Part shown: in pieces, positions 11,331 to 45,409 of the stretch | Layout: every line of letters begins with the position of its first letter | How positions within the stretch are numbered: position 1 is the stretch's first letter | Source of the DNA: Hyphochytrium catenoides | Lineage: Eukaryota; Protista; Hyphochytriomycota | Length of the DNA stretch: 46,788 bases | Reading direction: 5' to 3' | NCBI GenBank assembly: GCA_900088475.1 | Contig: FLMG01000436.1 | Span: forward strand, 1 to 46,788 | Position numbers and translations under genes: made by a program | Notes under the pieces: model-generated | Told to the model about the DNA's origin: nothing | Seen by the model: the letters and a program-made list of their open reading frames with translations, nothing else | Database searches by the model: none

Positions 11331-14300
11331 CTATTGCGGGTAGGTTGGAGCTGTGGAGCCGTCTACAGGGGCATGGGTATTACCCTCAGTGACCTTATGG
11401 CCCTGTCCTCCAATGTTCTGACCACACTCTGGGCAAGTGGACTTCTGCATTGGACCTCCACACTCCCCGACAGCGTACAAGTGCCCATCGGGACATCGGA
11501 ACCAGCCGCCAGACCGGATCTCACCTCTCATCGCTGCCACCACCTGGGCCAACTCCTCTTGCGTGACTCGACTTCTTCTTTCGAAGGAAGTTTTCATGCA
11601 CCCTTCCTCTCCTAGTAAGAGCTCGTCCCGTAGTCTTGCTTCGAACGCTTCGTAGCTGCCACACCGAGCAGGTAGTTGAATCAATTGAGACTCTGAGAGA
11701 AAGTGCACGTTCTCGTCAACGCTAGGGACCACGAAGACCTGGTGAAATGAGGAGGAAAGATGCGTGACAAGATGGCCAAACGATCTGCAAATCACCAGGC
11801 GCAGAGTAAGGTCAGACACGCGAGAGATCCACTCCATAAACCATCCCCGTAGCTTTTCCATGGCCATTCTATCAGCCCACGAGTCTTCGATAAAAGTGAT
11901 GCAGTCCTTGATCTCGGAGACATCCAAGTAATCGGTTCCAAAAAATAATAACTGAAGCTCCTTTCCAGTCATTGCGCCCACTTCTTCAGCTACGTTGAGC
12001 TTCAAAAAACCCTCCTGAAGCTTCTCCAATGAGCCTTGGCGTTGCCTAACCAGCCTGTGCCATATTGCCTCGCATATGACGCTTGCTTTATTCTCGTCCG
12101 TCACATTCTGTTCTGATAACGATCCCGTTAGCACCCCCACAGAGAAAGCATAATCTAGAGCATTCTGACGCCCACAGAGGATGTTTCGGTAGAGGATGGT
12201 GTCCTCCTCGCATGTCTCCAATAAATATGCTAGACAGATGTCTACGTCCGTTGGCTGTTTATTGTGGCCAAGAAGGAACCCCAACGAGGAACTGTTGAGG
12301 GTGATTGGCAGGCGGATCCCCTCGATCAGACACTTTGCCATCATGGTCCCAATAGTATAGAAGTCGTCTTGGTTGCCAGTGGCTGTGGGTAGGTAAGCTT
12401 TGCCTGTTGCTACAGCTATCTCCTCCCCACTAGAAGGCTCGTCCCATATTGTCTGCGTAAACAGCCCGTACTTTGGTCTCAGTATCTCACTGAAAAACTT
12501 TTCCATCATCTCTGCTAAGGGTCTTCGAACGCCACCGTCAGTAAGGATCTGAACAGGGCTGTGGATATCAATGATGGTAGAAAAGGCCCTTAAGAGGCTT
12601 CGGCAAAGTGCCTCGCTTTCATCTTCTACGTCTGTGATAGCTAGTCTCAGCTGTGTGGCTGGTGCTCTCTTCCGACTATTTGCAAGGCTCCGCATGACCA
12701 TTTTGACCTTGGCCACTGGATCGTACTTTGACGGTCGCCGCACCAGTAGCTCTTCCTGCAAGAGTTCTTGGGCTAGTAAGCGCTCTTCTGGCCTCAGACG
12801 TAGGAGCTGAGAGCAAATTCGTACATAGGCCTTCATATGTGCTTCTCGGAAGAAGTTACTGAGGATATTATAGTCGATGGCTGTAGGATCCATAAAGGCT
12901 AGACCGACCGTTCCTCGGAACTTGTCCGGAAACGCCTTAGGCAGGACTGGCAGCAGCGGCTCCAGCATCATACAACCCAACGACCACATGTCCAGGGCAA
13001 ACGGATGCTCTCGCCATGTCCCATCTTGAGCTTCGGGAGCTCCATAACCGAGTGTCAGGGCGCCATGTAAGGTCGTTGTCAGGGTGACTGCCTTATCGAT
13101 GTCTAAGCTAATTCCAAAGTCACACAAAGCGATTCTAGCTGAATCACTCAACAGAATGTTTTCTGGCTTAAGATCTCGGTGCACGATGCCTTTGGCATGA
13201 ATGTGTGCGAGAGCTTGAGCTATTTGATGGATAGTAGTTTGCAGCTGGAGCCACTCCTCGCCTTCTTCTGCAAAAGTATTGAACCGCTCTACGTGGCTCT
13301 GCAGCCCTGTCACCCACCGCCGCAAGTTGCCCTTCTCATAGAACGGCATCTGAATATAAGTAATGGTCTCTGGGTCGTTAATGTCAAGAAAGATACGCCT
13401 AATAGGGACCACGAGGGGATGCTTGAGATTGCATAACCGCTCAGCTTCTTTCCTGAACCCCTTCCGTCCAAGCAACTTCTTGATGACACAGAGTTGGCCA
13501 TCGCGATCCTTCATAACCTGCACGTTCGGACCTAAGTTACCGACCTCGACAGGCTCATAGTCCCTAATAGTGACACTTAAGTCCAGCGCCTTTGCTGCAA
13601 GTCCAGAGGGCAAGGCGCCAGCCACAGAGAGGGACTTCGGGTCGTCTGATAGAAGCTCCGGAAAGTGCTCAGGCACCCTCTTGTCTGACAGAATACTAGC
13701 AAGTTTGGCAGCCCGCTCCTGAAGTCCTTTCAAAGCATATTCTTTCTCTTTTTTCACTTCTTGGAGCTTCAATGCTCTTTGAGCATCATCCTCTTCCGCA
13801 ATTTCAATCTCGGTGTTGAGCCGCTTGATATCGTTGCGCAGTGGCTATGCTTGAGACTCAAGCTCCGCTCTCTCGGCTTTAGCCTTTGCTGCTCTGATGC
13901 CCAGATATTCTATGTCTTTCCATAGTTGGATGTTCTTCTCAAGCTCCAAGATGTCGGCACTGCGCTTTGGTTGGGCTACCTGGGAAAGAAAAGATTCCGA
14001 TGACGCTATCTCCCGAAGCCTGAGAAAGTATGAATCCATCCTCTGATGCATGGCCCTGAGACGGCTCTGGAAAGAAGTTCTCATCTCTTCTAACTCTTTT
14101 TGGAGCTGTGAATGTGTGGCCACTGTTCCCGCCATCTCCTGCAACTCAGGCAGGGCTAGAAGGACTTTATACCATGTCGTCTTCTTCAGCTTTGGCTGCT
14201 TGCTCTGCCAGAGGGTAAACTGTTTGTCAAGAGATTGCCACCTATCCATGCTCGGAATGTAGTTGTCAGCCAGCTCGTTCAGCAGCTGATCAAGCAGCTG

Positions 14301-17189
14301 CTTGACATTGTGTTGCCCCTGATCATAGCAGCGTTAGCCTAGCAGGAACTACTACATAATTTATCAGACAATGGCACACGCTACCTTCTGAGCAGATAGT
14401 GATGGAGGTAGAACCATAGAGGCCGTGGCAGCCAGAACGTGATTCTTGATATTCTTACGCAACTCATAGCTGTTTTCGCCCGCTCTCAGTAAGCTCAGCT
14501 GCTCTTCAAAGCTGCTAAGCAGCTGGCTCCGCTTTTCGTTCCGAATACTTACTTTACTCCCATCGCTAGGATCCTTCTTAGCTTCTGCAGATAGTCGCTT
14601 CACATCTTGAGTCAGCGCTAATGTTCTCTTGCTCCCCTGTTGCGCCTTAAGTTCATTACCCTCCAAGCGATCAAGAAGATCTCCGGTACCATCTAATGTC
14701 TCTGATAAGTGAAGCTTAACACATAGCTTTTCAATAGCCGTGAGGACGGGCTTATGCACCTTATCAGACAGGTGGAGCCCTATAGTACGCTTCATGATGT
14801 CTTGGAATATTTGATCTGGACGAAGGCTCTCAATTACCTCCGCCGTCTCCACGTCTGGCTCCACCGTAGCCCCTCCTGCACTTATGCGTTGCGGTGGGCT
14901 AGCCTGTTTGCCCGCTGCCCTGTTGTTCTCTTGCTGATCTATGTCACGCCATACCACTGCTAAGCTTTGAATCAAATCGCTGTGACCCTTCAGTATCTTC
15001 ACACATTCTTTCGAGTCCAGGTCCCAGATAGAGATCGAGTTGGCGCCGGATCCCGAGATGACCGTCTTACAATCTAGCGAGACTATGACCGTGTACACAC
15101 GGCCTCCACTTCCTAAGAGTGTAGCCTTGCAAGCCCCAGTGGTGAGGTCCCATACCCGAATGGTCTTATCCCAGGAGCCTGAGATTATAGTGGTGCAGTC
15201 CTGTGAGATGGTGACGCTGCGGACGGTATCAGTATGACCTCGGAGAACGTGCAAACAATGCCCGGAGTGTGTGTCCCAGACTCTAATTGTCCTATCTCTA
15301 GAACCGGACACCGCCGTCTGACCATTCAAAGAGATAGCCACGCTATAGATAATGTTCCTATGACCATGTAAGGGTGTCACGCACGCCTGGAGGTCTAGAT
15401 CCCAAACACGAACTGTCTTGTCTCCAGACCCAGAAACCACCTTCTTGCCGTTGACAGAGGCAGCGACGCTGTAAACTATCCCTTGATGGCCTTCCAAAAT
15501 TATTATGCACCTTCGTGACTCCAGATCCCACACCCAGATTGTTCCATCGTAACAACCTGAGATCAGCTGTCTGCCATCCGGAGATATGACGACGCAGACG
15601 ACTCCAGTGTTATGTCCTTGTAGGGTCTTCACACAGGATCCGGATTGAAGATCAAAGCATCTAACTTCCTTTCCTGTGGAGTTGGAGGCCACTAGCTTCC
15701 CATCAGGAGAGACTGACACATTTCCAGCCATATCGCTTTGTCCCTGTAAGGTCTTCAGGCACACTCCAGAAACGAAATCCCAGACGCGAATGGTCTTATC
15801 CCATGATCCTGAGACTATCGTGGCTCCACGTAGTTGCAATTCAGCTCCACTCTCTTTGAAAGTGTTTGAAGCAGTAGCAAGATTGAGGCCATCGATATCT
15901 ATGAAAGCAGCAGAAGCGATAGAGAAGGTAGTATTAGAAACGCTAGGCCTAACTGCTTCACAAGCGGGGCATTCCCTTTGGTGTGCGTTATTCCCGCACA
16001 GACAGAGCGTGCACTGCCAATCCTCCTTACTCCTCACAAGGGGCGTTGACAGACCCAGCGTTGATTTATCCGATTCAGCGTCAGTGCTCGAAGGAGCTGT
16101 AGGAAGCGGTGCGGGTCTGGGCTCTGAGGCGACTAGTGCCTTAGTGGCAGTATCAAACAGCAATGTAGGCATAACTACTGCGTCCTTTAGTGTTGGCTTA
16201 CGAGGTGCCTGAAATCCGCTCATCGCGACGCTCTCGACAGATGTGCTGTGACCTTCCAGGACCTTCACACACACCTCAGACTTCAAATCCCATATCCGGA
16301 GGGTCTTATCCTTAGATCCAGAGACCAGACTTCCACCATCGGGCGAGATAGCTATGGTCCAAACCTCCAGAGTGTGCCCTAGCAAGGTCCTCATACAGAC
16401 GCCGGAGTCCAGGTCCCAGACGCGGATCGTCATGTCCATAGAGCCCGAAAGCACTTTTGTTCCATCTGGCGAGATAGCCACAGCGGAGACTGTCTCCGTA
16501 TGCCCTTCTAGAGTTTTCAAGGAGATCCCAGAGGCCAAATCCCATATGCGCCCTGTCTTATCTACGGAGCCTGAAACCACCTTTGTCCCATCAGGCGATA
16601 TGGCAAGGGTCCAAACCGTTAGGCTATGTCCTTGCAGAGTCTTCACGCAGGCTCCAGCCTCAAGATCCCAGAGACGGATCGTACTGTCCAACGAACCTGA
16701 GACAAGCGTCTTTCCATCTGGGGAGATAGTCACGACACGGACGATCTTAGAATGCCCGAGCAGCGTTTTCAAACAAATCCCTGACTCCAAATCCCAAACA
16801 CATATTCCGTCATCTCCAGAGGCAGTCACCACTCTTTTGCCATCAGGTGATATAGCGACGCTGCGGACACCGGTGGTACGGCCCTGCAGCGTTCTAAGGC
16901 ATGCACCAGAACTCAACTCCCAGACACGTATTGTCTCGTCCCAGGAGCCGGAAACTACCTTCTTACCATCATTCGAAATAGCGACGCTACTCACAAACTC
17001 AGAATGGCCTTGCAGGATCCTCAGGCAGACCCCAGTGAGCACATCCCAGACTCGGATTTCACCATCTTCAGAGCCCGACACCACTATCAGGCCTCCATCG
17101 TCTTGGTGGCGCGACCCCTTCTCCGTCAGTGCACCACCGGTGGTCCCTACCTTCTCTTCCTCTCGACCAAGATGCTCGTCAGCTTGCAT
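11331..17189 (-). CDS. WD40(7)-RanBP2 ZnF-WD40(7)-coiled coil-Ser/Thr kinase-HECT-like-RZ finger protein; exons 14385-17189 and 11331-14318; one in-frame TAG at 13845-13847 (possible recent pseudogene allele)
   Basis: ORFs 14364-17321, 13845-14249 and 11331-13772 share one frame. A 66-nt GT-AG intron joins the first two and only a single TAG separates the last two. Motifs: GH..WD repeats; WQCTLCLCGNNAHQRECPAC; VIKK, HRDLKPEN, DFG, APE; DGG..FF..PKYGLF, VTDENK, ELQLLFFG; WFRCPDGHLYAVGECGGPMQKSTCPECGQNIGG. The true start may lie further upstream. Confidence 0.85.
14319..14384 (-). other. 66-nt spliceosomal intron
   Basis: AAG|GTAGCG...GCTAAC...ATCAG|GGG; removes in-frame TGA/TAA and gives ...LSAQK-GQHNVKQLLDQ... 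Confidence 0.85.
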
Positions 17190-32568: not shown

Positions 32569-34961
32569 ATGAAGCTGCAATCCCTTCTCCTAGCAGCTTT
32601 TAGCTGCTTCCTTGCGGCTGCGGAAGCCGCGCGAGTGGATCGTTGCACTGTCCCAAACTTTATCGCTCCCACCTACGATGACGGGCCAGCAGCTGGCACC
32701 ACGCCCACGCTTCTGGACACCCTGATCAAGGAAAAAGCAAAGCTAACGTTCTTTGTGGTTGGCCAGATGTTAGATAGTGCTGAGGGTAAAGAAATCCTAA
32801 AGAAGATGGACGCCGATGGCCAGCACATTGCAATGCACTCTCACACCCACCAAGATATCGACAAGATGACCAGGGAACAGATAGCAGAGGAGGTCAAGCA
32901 GAACAGTGACAGAGTCAACCATGTTATCAACAAGCGCCCAAGGTTCTTCCGCTGCCCATTCGGCTCCTGTGGACCCGAGAAAGTGGCTATTTTGGAGTCG
33001 CTGGGCCTGAGAGTGATTCACTGGAGCGATGACGCGGGTTAGTAGCAGAGCGACAGCCACTGCACCCGTTGATCGCTTTTCTTCTGAGGCTCGTCCTTTG
33101 TTCCTTTTTTCAGTATTCTGGCTGTTCTACTTCATATGCCCAGTCTCTGCCTAGTCGTGTACTTTGCCCTCTCTCACTTGTCATACTGACCCTTACTTTG
33201 GCCTCTTCCCCTTACCCGCCAGGTGACACTAATGACTGGAGGCCCGAGAACGCCAACAAGGTAGCGAACGTGGTCAACACGTACAGGAAGGCATTGGACG
33301 ACCCCAACGTCAGCATCTTCCTGCAGCACGACCTATACAGCTGGTCAGTGCAGGCGGCTAAGGAATTCATTCCGCTTATCAGATCTAAGGGAAAAGTCGT
33401 GGCAACCGTACCGGAATGTTTGGGAGACTCGAAGCTGTACTACACAGAGGCCGAGTGGACAGCTATCCTCCAGCAGTTCCAAGGAGGAGTCGCAGCCCCT
33501 ACACCTTCCCTTACTCCAGCTCCTCGGCCTGTAACTGTTGCACCAGTAGCACCTACACCGGCTCCAGTTGCACCTACACCGGCTCCAGTTGCACCTACAC
33601 CGGCTCCAGTTGCACCTACACCGCCTCCAGAGGCTCCCACACTAGCTCCTGTGGCGCCAACATCAGCGCCTGGGGCTCCTAGCCCTGAGTCCCCTCCTGC
33701 CACCACGCAGCCAGCGGCTACGGGGGCACCGCAAGTTCCGACTTTGGCCCCGATCGAGGCTCCTAACACGCCAGCACCTGGACCCAGCGAGAGTCCTTCC
33801 GCTACCCCCTCTCCCAACTCTGAAGCCCCTGCACCTGGCTCTCAGTCTCCCCCTATTTTGACACCGATCACGGACAGTCCTTACTATCCTCCAGCAGCAC
33901 CAAGTGAGCTTCCTACCAGCTCCACACCGACATCCGCTCCAGCCACAGGAGGAGAGACGTCCGCCCCACCTGCCTCACAGCTCCCTACTTTAGCTCCGAT
34001 GGAGCCATCCACTGAGGCGCCTCCGATTGGAGAGCAAACTCCTCCACCTTCCTCTCAGTCTCCTCCAGTGGTGACTCCAATCACTGACTCTCCTAACTAT
34101 CCTCCGACATCACCAAGTGAGCTGCCTGCAACCTCATCGCCCACCAGTTCTCCAACCACAGGCGCGGAGACCCCTGCCCCCAGTGCTTCGGAGATTCCTA
34201 CTCTCGCGCCTATGGAACCACCAGCAGTCACCCCCACTGCAGGAGGAAGCGAGACTCCTGCCCCTGGTTCGCAACAGCCAACCTCAAGTCCCGCAGCAGC
34301 TCCCACCACAGCTCCCAGCGGGGATCTAGTGCAAGACCCCACTCTGCCGCCTGCGACTCCATCTCAAGCTCCGGGTTCAGCTCCTCCTGTTACGGAGACC
34401 CCTGCTGCTCCCACTAACACCCCTCCTGCATCTACTGAGACCCCTGCTGTTCCCGTTCCCTCATCTTCGGCACCCGCACCCCAGGAGCAATGTGGTGCCG
34501 CACAGAACAACGTTGACTACTTTGGCAATGACCTCAAGTCGACCAGAAGGAAGAGATCATCGGACTGCTGCGCTGACTGCCTTCAGACTCAAGGCTGCGA
34601 GGGCTATGTGTGGACCAAGTACAGAGGAGGGACCTGCTGGCTCAAGAGCAGTCTTTCCTCTCGGCGGACATGGAGCTACGGTGCTGTCTCCGCCGCTGTA
34701 ATAGCTTCTCCAAGCGGTGACTCCTCCACCCCACCAGCTGAGGGATGCACAAAAATGGAGAGAGGCATTGACTATTTTGGAGACGACATCGGGAATGCTC
34801 GTGCGCCAAGAGCGAAAGACTGCTACGACCTTTGCAGAAAGAAGAAAGGTTGCACTGCCTTTGCCTGGAATTCCTACCGAGGAGGGACCTGCTGGCTAAA
34901 GAACGGCACCGGGAAGCGGAAGTACGACTCCAGCGTTACCTCTGGCACTGTTTGTCTCTAA
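32569..34961 (+). CDS. Secreted CE4 polysaccharide/chitin deacetylase with Pro/Thr/Ser stalk and two C-terminal PAN/Apple domains; exons 32569-33037 and 33223-34961 (735 aa)
   Basis: Signal peptide; motifs TYDDGP, HSHTH, RCPFG, DTNDW, LQHD; splicing restores IHWSDDAG-DTNDWR, colinear with the paralogue IHWSGDEGDTNDWR; two DYFG.D...C...C....GC....W..Y.GGTCWLK domains. Confidence 0.92.
33038..33222 (+). other. 185-nt spliceosomal intron
   Basis: G|GTTAGT...ACTGAC...pyrimidine tract...CCAG|GT; frame restored. Confidence 0.9.
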
Positions 34962-43562: not shown

Positions 43563-45409
43563 CCTACCCGCAGCTCGAACTCCCTCTTGTGAAGGGTCGA
43601 AGCTGAACATTCTACACCTCCCCGCATGCTGTTGACCCGCTAGAAAGAGATTACTTGCTTCTTGGGTTTCCATTGCACACATTTCTCGATGTACGATGAA
43701 CAGCGAGGTTGGCGAGATGTTGTTTCCTTAGCCTCTTTGATAAACGCGTCGAGGTCTCCAGAAAATTCCACATTGTCTGACTGCTTCAGCGCTAGGTAGA
43801 AAGTGTGGAGAATATTGATTTTAGCGTCAAGCTTTTCTTGGTTCGAAGCCTGCGTATTGGTTAGTTGTCCTTCATTTGGATCCTTGGGACCTTGATTTTG
43901 GTTGAATCCTGTTCGTACTTCCTCTTCGGAAAGAGATACTTTAGCTGGTTGTTGAGATGCTTCCTTAGTGATGAGCTGGTTGTGGTCTTCAGTTCTTCTC
44001 AGTATTGCCTTGACTGTTTCACGATAAGAAGTCTTCTTCCTTGATGAAAACATAAGTCAGTAATTTTCTTCAAAGCTTTTGACAGATTCTGCTTAGAGCG
44101 TGAGTTCCGGAAAGACGGTCTGCGATGAGCGTTCTGCTCGAGTTCCCAGCACTTCTCTGAAGGATGGCTGGGACTTCCGAAAAATGGGCACTCCGGCCAT
44201 TGGTCGCGAACTTATAATATTTGATGATGATGATGACCCTGGATGAGCCTTGTTCTTGGTCTCTTGATGACGGTGACGATGGGGTTCCTTTATCCTTTGT
44301 TGATGTAGAGAGTATGCTGCAAAGCCTTCTTCTTCATCATAACTCTTGTTGCTAGTGCGAATAGCACCTCTTCGGTGTTGTTCTCCGATAAGAATATCAT
44401 CTATGGCACTTGCACATAGTGCGCCCGTTCCACGCACTTGAATAGCTTGAGCAATAATACCTTCATATGACGGTGGAAGGGCCATAAGTACTGCGACTTT
44501 GTAGAGGTTGTCGTAGAAAAAATCTTTCTCCTCCATCATTTCGCGAAGTAAATCAAGCTTTCTTCTCTGCTCGCACAGGAATAGGCTAATGTCTTGTTCT
44601 TCGGCTACGTTTGCCGATAAGAAAGAGGTAAGAGTAGTCACAATGATGTTGTTTGCGCTTCGGCTCTCAAAAGATTCTTCCAACTTCAGCCAAGCTTCTC
44701 TCGCAGTTCCTATAATACGAGGTAGAAGTGGAATAAGGTTGTCAGCCACTGCCAAATCTTGTTGAACGGCCTTTTGTCATTCCTTAGCCAAGAAGACTGC
44801 GGCGTAGCCCTAGACGTAGACATGGGCTTGTTCTTTGAGGAGATATCAGGGGATCCTTGGCTCCCGTCAACATGATGAAGAAGGTTCAGTTCATCCAAGA
44901 TAGGCCTCCATCTTCAATCGTCAAACAGGGTAGTCCTCCATCCCTTGTAGCTTTAATATCGTAACCAGGAAAGAGCTCATTATGCTGATGATTCTGAGGG
45001 TTTGAAATAGGTCTTGATGATAAGAATGGAAAGAGAAATGGAGAATATGAGACTTTGTGTCCGTAGGATTTGGTGTTCTTCCTGCCTTGATAAATGAGAC
45101 GATATCTTCAGAACGAAGCGGTTTCAGAAGAAAATAATGGCACCAATGAACTCAGCGATGCCGATTTACCCCCTCTCACTCTTTGAAGCCGAAAAGAGGT
45201 GATTTTGGGCCGAAATCGTGCTTGAAACTTTCCCTTTGCAAAAGTACTCGTATGGTGAAATTTTCGCTACAGGGTTGACACTTTACCAAAATTTTGAGTG
45301 AAAACTTTTCAATGTTTCAACCCTTTGTAGTATAGTGAAGGAGACTTGTGTGAAGTCACGGAAACTGGTGACTGCCATGATGTGGTTCAGGAGACTTGGG
45401 AGCAGACAG
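43239..45409 (-). mobile_element. Copia-derived element with degenerate gag (44980-43640) and no pol, ending in PPT plus LTR
   Basis: KLQGMEDYPV*RLKMEAYL...HVDG, TAREAWLKLEESF, VLMALPPSYE; frame continues through TAA and TGA into ORF 43640-44053; no PR, IN or RT motifs before the PPT. Confidence 0.75.

Follow-up and report, generated by a model that had tools for sequence, protein, structure and literature searches.

RZ zinc fingers are, to our knowledge, the newest class of thioester-forming active sites among the E3 ubiquitin ligases (E3s), and the studies known to us concern only two proteins of animal immunity, both very large and each equipped with an unusual dock of its own for the ubiquitin-conjugating enzyme (E2). 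These fingers form a thioester with ubiquitin through their own cysteine (PMC12075652; 10.1101/2025.09.05.674436; 10.1101/2025.10.14.682297). In RNF213, a separate C-terminal domain (CTD) binds the E2 from which the RZ finger receives ubiquitin; residues C4451, H4455, C4471 and C4474 bind zinc, C4462 is the transthiolation nucleophile and H4483 is the general base (PMC12075652). In ZNFX1, the E2 is bound by a Z-RING/Miz domain and ubiquitin is passed to the RZ finger (10.1101/2025.09.05.674436; 10.1101/2025.10.14.682297). Here we describe a minus-strand gene in a 46,788-nucleotide stretch of the Hyphochytrium catenoides genome (GenBank assembly GCA_900088475.1, contig FLMG01000436.1, positions 1 to 46,788; hereafter the window), the 3' part of which encodes a protein kinase, a HECT domain without its catalytic cysteine and a C-terminal RZ finger. 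As judged from sequence, this pairing is conserved in a small and so far undescribed family of kinases from algae, oomycetes and protists. The family joins the RZ finger to the best-understood E2-binding, ubiquitin-positioning fold, that of the HECT ligases, with the active site of that fold lost.

The nearest published idea to the present family comes from G2E3, in which a non-functional and highly divergent HECT domain lies beside zinc fingers with ligase activity, and from the GL-Bikonta class of divergent HECT proteins, whose bikont members (Naegleria, Ectocarpus) have unusual, unexplained protein kinase domains (PMC3673628, Grau-Bove et al. 2013). The logic of a dead HECT domain beside active zinc fingers is shared, but the active fingers of G2E3 are RING/PHD-like, N-terminal and allosteric, whereas the finger considered here is C-terminal and belongs to the predicted thioester-forming RZ type, which was undefined in 2013. 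The present family probably overlaps the GL-Bikonta kinase-HECT lineage, as far as a comparison of descriptions can tell. A literature search found no paper on a protein with both an RZ finger and a HECT domain, and the ESM Atlas has no cluster of at least 50 members that combines the two; the nearest matches there, all with sub-threshold scores, were HECT clusters of a generic kind and one from giant viruses.

The open reading frame (ORF) under study occupies 11331-13772 on the minus strand and encodes 813 amino acids in a frame that is open to 13844; the plus-strand ORFs overlapping this region are short and unsupported. Pfam places Pkinase, HECT and ZnF_RZ-type domains in the ORF in that order from the N to the C terminus, each well above its curated cut-off. 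The features of the E3 module, in residues of the ORF, are as follows.

11613..12551, minus strand: pseudo-HECT domain without catalytic cysteine, residues 408-720 (Pfam, family profile and AlphaFold (AF2) model)
11952-12551, minus strand: N-lobe of the pseudo-HECT domain, residues ~408-607
11613-11951, minus strand: C-lobe of the pseudo-HECT domain, residues ~608-720
11691..11693, minus strand: Glu694, the residue in the column of the canonical HECT catalytic cysteine (hidden Markov model (HMM) alignment to HUWE1; hmmalign with the relative P0136)
11661..11663, minus strand: Cys704 in LPARCGSY, replacing the tyrosine of the canonical LPxY motif (aligned to the tyrosine of HUWE1 and P0136)
11532..11612, minus strand: linker 721-728, poorly conserved and of low predicted local distance difference test score (pLDDT), then helix 729-747 leading into the RZ finger (AF2 model; H330-348 in fragment numbering)
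11373..11534, minus strand: RZ finger, residues 747-800 (Pfam ZnF_RZ-type, PF20173; 76.1 bits against a cut-off of 27, E 1.5e-21)
11331..11372, minus strand: C-terminal tail, residues 801-813 ending in TYPQ, with the TAG stop (shared termini in a 17-sequence alignment)

Evidence for the HECT fold came from Pfam, from profile alignment and from structural modelling. The Pfam HECT family (PF00632) matched residues 427-654 with 58.7 bits against a cut-off of 23.9 (E 1e-15), a match that spans only positions 4-228 of the 306 in the profile and misses the C-lobe. A profile of 17 family members aligned to solved HECT domains over both lobes, including HUWE1 (3h1d residues 107-396, E 1.4e-13) and E6AP (1c4z residues 53-350) as well as UBR5, NEDD4 and HACE1. 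An AF2 model computed from a 17-sequence alignment had a mean pLDDT of 81.4, and a Foldseek comparison of this model with the PDB returned HUWE1, NEDD4, AREL1, E6AP and other HECT domains over ~330-355 columns with probability 1.0. Against Swiss-Prot models, residues 4-320 of the modelled fragment aligned to within ~10 residues of the canonical HECT C-terminus. The Swiss-Prot matches had low template modelling scores (~0.4) and root-mean-square deviations of 9-16 Å, probably because the two HECT lobes differ in their orientation. Judged by profile and model, a complete two-lobed HECT fold is present, with N-lobe, hinge and C-lobe, and the small subdomain of the N-lobe is included and conserved to the same degree as the remaining HECT fold.

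The C-lobe of the model consists, in order, of strand 679-684, strand 690-692, the loop with Glu694, strand 697-701, the loop with Cys704 and helix 707-717, which is the order found in a HECT C-lobe. Within it, the segment FLSESQLIQLP (residues 691-701, window 11670-11702) covers the former active site, and Glu694 stood opposite the catalytic cysteine both in the residue-level HMM alignment to HUWE1 and in the hmmalign alignment with P0136, a relative of canonical type. The domain departs from a HECT ligase in two respects. The C-lobe loop that precedes the xLxLP strand has no catalytic cysteine, Glu694 being there, and the last C-lobe helix (707-717) is not near the end of the protein; where canonical members have a short tail with the -4 Phe region, the chain continues through a linker and another helix into an RZ finger of 54 residues.

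The RZ finger itself has retained the residues associated with activity. A phmmer search of PDB sequences aligned residues 749-797 with residues 4441-4488 of mouse RNF213 (E ~1e-8; 9e-9), and the putative zinc ligands Cys760, His764, Cys780 and Cys783 aligned with C4451, H4455, C4471 and C4474 of that protein. The equivalent of the nucleophile C4462 is Cys771 (11460-11462) and that of the general base H4483 is His792 (11397-11399), and both are retained in most members of the family. The finger begins 53 residues after Glu694, and Cys771 lies 77 residues after it. An earlier sequence-only reading of this locus had recognised motifs of both HECT lobes, had aligned a glutamate to the catalytic cysteine by eye and had noted an intact RZ finger about 50 residues further on; the profile, structural and Pfam results described above bear out each of these observations, with zinc ligands and the Cys-His dyad kept.

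The regions on either side of the finger may also have counterparts elsewhere. In ZNFX1 and RNF213, a hinged, ubiquitin-binding helix lies directly N-terminal to the RZ finger (10.1101/2025.10.14.682297), and we infer that helix 729-747 is its equivalent; Ala747 and Met748 are invariant in a 9-sequence alignment. At the other end, the query stops 13 residues past the finger and its homologues terminate at the same point, with PAWPQ. The tail (11334-11372) has the family consensus D-x-D-G-A-x-x-P-A-W-P-Q followed by the stop codon, and its aromatic residue at position -3 is reminiscent of the -4 Phe that matters for function in the tails of canonical HECT domains. A continuation of the coding sequence past the terminal TAG by way of a GTAGAG donor was considered and rejected, as the homologues share the PAWPQ/TYPQ end.

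To place the module in a wider context, residues 400-813 were searched exhaustively against 1.84 billion representative proteins, and the best 150 of 1,785 matches were used. The search recovered a family that shares the whole module, and 164 retrieved proteins were aligned to the family HMM so that the critical columns could be read off. Mesostigma viride contributes at least five loci, with isoforms, and further members are from Myrmecia bisecta and from many metagenome eukaryotes; the public databases annotate the proteins of this family as kinases or hypothetical proteins. The kinase is N-terminal to the pseudo-HECT domain in nearly all homologues, and the Mesostigma paralogues have ankyrin repeats instead of WD40 propellers. 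A scan of metagenome loci with the 9-sequence alignment gave 22 loci, the HECT-like part being covered only in L002 and L010; the latter gene has the same layout of coiled coil, kinase, pseudo-HECT (with Gly at the cysteine column) and RZ finger.

The loss of the HECT cysteine extends across the family. In a non-redundant set of ~40 relatives, an RZ finger, whether intact, decayed or truncated, comes after the HECT C-lobe, and the old catalytic column of these proteins holds E, D, N, G, R, A, S, F or Q, with Cys in none among the matches listed. The only protein with Cys in this column, again among the matches listed, is P0136, a metagenome protein without an RZ finger. Its Pfam HECT match scores 153.8 bits, its Cys704 column holds the canonical LPxY Tyr, its C-terminus is of canonical type and a kinase remnant lies upstream. 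A kinase and a HECT domain in one polypeptide link P0136 to the present family, as they do, by annotation, Dictyostelium Q8SSY6 ('bifunctional Ser/Thr kinase/NEDD4-like E3'), but P0136 differs in having kept its HECT active site and in lacking the finger. The sequence-only reading had suggested examining whether loss of the cysteine accompanies the RZ finger, and in this collection it does, since no RZ-bearing homologue with the cysteine was found and the only cysteine-retaining relative has no RZ finger.

Conservation was compared across a 19-member non-redundant set. The large subdomain of the N-lobe, its small subdomain and the C-lobe were equal at 0.52-0.54, the RZ finger reached 0.65 and the tail 0.68, the highest value in the module, while the old cysteine column was among the most variable positions of the C-lobe. 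Even conservation of the HECT regions together with higher conservation of the finger and tail is an argument that the HECT fold as a whole has kept a function other than catalysis. The pattern in these sequences suggests that loss of the HECT nucleophile is old and family-wide and not a local decay, and that the fold was kept while the strongest selection acted on the RZ finger.

Upstream of the E3 module, the gene contains the following features.

12750..13541, minus strand: Ser/Thr protein kinase domain, ORF residues 78-341 (Pfam Pkinase, PF00069; 114.9 bits)
13542..14318, minus strand: helical, coiled-coil-like linker (one-frame translation across an in-frame TAG at 13845-13847; no Pfam family at or above cut-off)
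14319..14384, minus strand: predicted intron of 66 nucleotides, phase 0, GTAGCG...CTAAC...CAG (splice signals read from the sequence)
14385..17189, minus strand: N-terminal exon with two WD40 propellers at ~16224-17102 and ~14982-15857 (Pfam WD40, 427.9 bits, 14 repeats)

The catalytic motifs of the kinase are present (Lys98, HRD at 198-200 and DFG at 218-220) and its Gly-rich loop is degenerate. The predicted intron has a perfect CTAAC branch site and connects the WD40 exon, which comprises 935 codons from a start ATG at 17189, to the exon encoding linker, kinase and E3 module. Reading through the TAG, the predicted product would be a protein of ~1,930 residues with a WD40 sensor, a coiled coil, a kinase, a pseudo-HECT domain and an RZ finger.

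In canonical HECT ligases, the N-lobe binds the E2 and the C-lobe swings on a hinge. From the sequence comparisons and by analogy with the characterized RZ ligases, we consider it fairly probable, if far from certain, that the protein would act as an RZ-type, cysteine-dependent transthiolating E3 on a HECT-derived scaffold that docks or positions the ubiquitin-charged E2 (E2~Ub). The zinc finger has probably replaced the HECT domain as the site of ubiquitin transfer. Cys771 would take ubiquitin from E2~Ub, as the corresponding cysteines of RNF213 and ZNFX1 do, and ubiquitin would then be passed to a substrate with the assistance of His792. The pseudo-HECT domain would supply the role of the partner module that RZ fingers need, with its N-lobe docking the E2 and its hinged C-lobe forming an arm that bears the RZ finger on a flexible linker, and the upstream kinase and WD40 propellers might provide regulation and target sensing. 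Of these elements, the RZ finger as active site is more likely than the N-lobe as E2 dock. Because the histidine base is kept, non-protein substrates are possible by analogy. The sequence-only reading had proposed such a hybrid mechanism from the premise that RZ fingers act through their own cysteine with the E2 held on a separate module, a premise that agrees with the published work on RNF213 (PMC12075652) and ZNFX1 (10.1101/2025.09.05.674436; 10.1101/2025.10.14.682297); its structural premises hold as far as the predicted domains go, and the interpretation is partly supported.

Comparison with the two described RZ ligases indicates what would be shared and what would be new. The zinc-ligand pattern, the nucleophile cysteine and the general-base histidine are identical to those of RNF213, in which the RZ finger likewise relies on a separate E2-binding module. 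RNF213, however, docks its E2 on a novel helical CTD and is regulated through a dynein-like AAA core, whereas here the neighbor of the finger is a HECT domain without its cysteine, accompanied by a kinase and WD40 propellers; the RNF213 finger is also part of a 5,000-residue giant, whereas the whole E3 module here measures ~400 residues. ZNFX1 (C1860/H1881) has a C-terminal RZ finger that is likewise preceded by a helix, and carries in the one chain an enzyme domain that uses nucleotides, and it follows the same logic of an E2-binding module and an RZ nucleophile, provided that the pseudo-HECT domain has the E2 role proposed for it. The dock of ZNFX1 is by contrast RING/Miz-like, with an allosteric E3 activity in its own right, and ZNFX1 contains a helicase where the present protein has none. 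We know of no allosteric discharge activity for a HECT N-lobe. A bolder version of the proposal, which we hold to be quite improbable, is that the kinase-pseudoHECT-RZ module represents a third and compact solution to RZ transfer, in which the HECT fold would dock E2~Ub and swing the RZ finger in, possibly with Cys704 as a relay. The kinase and the variable repeat sensors, which are WD40 propellers here and ankyrin repeats in Mesostigma, would then gate the module within a cell-autonomous defence of protists and algae, and this defence, like RNF213 and ZNFX1, might attach ubiquitin to targets other than proteins.

Other readings of the module assign the HECT fold a different part. It could be a structural, ubiquitin-binding, substrate-binding or autoregulatory scaffold and not an E2 dock, with the E2 engaged through the RZ finger and its preceding helix, through the tail or through a partner in trans. 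Conservation is flat over the HECT sub-regions without enrichment in the E2-binding small subdomain, the most conserved stretch is the tail after the finger, and the RZ domains of ZNFX1 are on their own active to some extent and use the helix in front of them to bind ubiquitin (10.1101/2025.10.14.682297), all of which favor such a scaffold. Yet a dedicated neighboring module binds the E2 in both characterized RZ ligases, the HECT fold is the only candidate here with a precedent for E2 binding, and the whole bilobal fold, including the hinge region, has been kept across distant lineages; we regard this reading as unlikely. The proposal of an RZ-centred ligase has also to be weighed against several features of the family and of this copy that do not fit it easily. 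The RZ nucleophile has been lost with the zinc ligands kept in P0025 and P0039 (Pro) and in P0050 (Ala), the finger of P0123 (Cymbomonas) has decayed to a GGWY relic, and P0010 (Lagenidium giganteum DBA03693.1) has a different Cys-rich tail in place of the RZ finger. Such nucleophile-less, decayed or replaced fingers imply that the RZ finger is not indispensable to every member, and from their sequences P0025, P0039, P0050 and P0123 are possible pseudo-enzymes within the family. The co-occurrence test is moreover one-sided, with a single cysteine-retaining, RZ-less relative recovered among the matches listed; an in-frame TAG lies upstream of the kinase in this copy, and the ORF translation has no ATG before the essential kinase N-lobe. 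Finally, Cys704 of the C-lobe is conserved in 16 of the 19 non-redundant members. This cysteine, within LPARCGSY (residues 700-707, window 11652-11675), had been put forward in the sequence-only reading as an alternative nucleophile, and by analogy with MYCBP2 the C-lobe might still be catalytic through it, with Cys704 serving alone as nucleophile or taking ubiquitin first and handing it on to Cys771 in a two-cysteine relay. The residue is indeed present and is the sole strongly conserved non-zinc Cys of the C-lobe, at a position that is Tyr in canonical HECT domains. A placement of this cysteine at the canonical active site, which would have counted against the hybrid mechanism, is not borne out: Cys704 aligns with the LPxY Tyr that starts the last helix and not with the catalytic loop, and by alignment and by the secondary structure of the model it is not at the canonical catalytic position. 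In the model, strand 697-701 ends three residues before Cys704, which occupies the loop leading to helix 707-717, the last of the C-lobe. As seen from position 694 it lies beyond the far end of this five-residue strand, so that the geometry of these elements places it probably ~15 Å or more from the canonical site. An intact RZ finger also occurs without Cys704 in P0001, P0012 and P0051. MYCBP2 (RCR) and the RBR ligases do share with the proposed ligase the principle that an E2-binding module passes ubiquitin to the Cys of a separate zinc domain with a His base nearby, but their folds are different and no RING1 is present here, and a relay through Cys704 is speculation only. Catalysis by Cys704 is in our view very improbable, and a structural role, substituting for the core Tyr, is the simplest reading of this residue.

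A further reading concerns this copy of the gene and not the family, namely that it is a recently inactivated pseudogene in which the module is a relic, with the family functional elsewhere. The in-frame TAG (13845-13847) is single and interrupts an otherwise continuous frame of helical coding sequence in the linker joining the kinase-E3 half to the WD40 half. Reassignment of a stop codon was examined and rejected, since reading TAG, TAA or TGA as sense in the window gave no selective lengthening of ORFs. The absence of an upstream ATG for the kinase N-lobe and the coding-like, not intron-like, position-specific GC content of the segment upstream of the TAG point in the same direction. On the other hand, the frames on either side of the TAG are open for 837 and 985 codons and all catalytic and zinc-binding residues are intact, from which it follows that any inactivation would be very recent. 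The TAG could also be an assembly error or an allele, or it could be the acceptor of a 135-nucleotide, in-frame GT..AG interval (13979-13845) that ends exactly at it. This interval has no pyrimidine tract, unlike the 66-nucleotide intron, and its GC content at the three codon positions (GC1/GC2/GC3 0.60/0.36/0.53, against 0.58/0.40/0.55 in the flanking exon) is coding-like and does not match that intron; a nonsense codon, an allele or an error appears more likely than a spliced-out interval. Because of the TAG and the missing ATG, the expression of this copy is uncertain although its predicted functional residues are all intact, and the kinase-E3 half may not be made from it. That the copy is a pseudogene nevertheless seems to us decidedly unlikely.

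If the RZ-type ligase on a HECT-derived scaffold is the correct reading, the family would illustrate, in nature, the shift of an active site between classes of E3, and its ~400-residue module would be tractable for studies of how RZ fingers receive and discharge ubiquitin. Predicted RZ-type ligases would also extend beyond animals and choanoflagellates to green algae and a soil protist. The combination of repeat sensors with a kinase and the expansion of paralogues are typical of defence genes. The family should be of real interest to the ubiquitin field, an interest that the in-frame stop in this copy tempers.

Several variants within the family merit a separate description. The related oomycete protein P0010 (residues ~560-891) has an IBR-like tail instead of the RZ finger: a kinase and a pseudo-HECT domain with Gly at the Cys column are followed by a Cys-rich tail that resembles the Rcat motif of RBR ligases and gives a weak IBR_1 match (E 4e-4, below cut-off). 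The Cys-less HECT scaffold may, on this sequence, combine with catalytic zinc fingers of different kinds. In P0012, P0018, P0030 and P0051, the ligand at the His764 column is replaced and CxCG occurs instead of CPxGH, which suggests a shifted zinc ligand in these proteins.

Other observations concern the remainder of the gene and the window. Between the two WD40 propellers lies a borderline RanBP2-type zinc ribbon (15942-16028; Zn_ribbon_RanBP, 26.8 bits against a cut-off of 27), which is without the Thr-Phe signature of ubiquitin-binding NZF fingers. The 66-nucleotide intron at 14319-14384 provides a template of splice signals for the Hyphochytrium catenoides genome. Elsewhere in the window are a polysaccharide deacetylase ORF at 1368-2792 (PF01522, E 8.5e-29), an ORF for a PAN/apple-domain protein at 33033-34958 (PAN_4, E 1.9e-18) and, at 44096-44776, a copia-type gag fragment that scores just below the Pfam cut-off.

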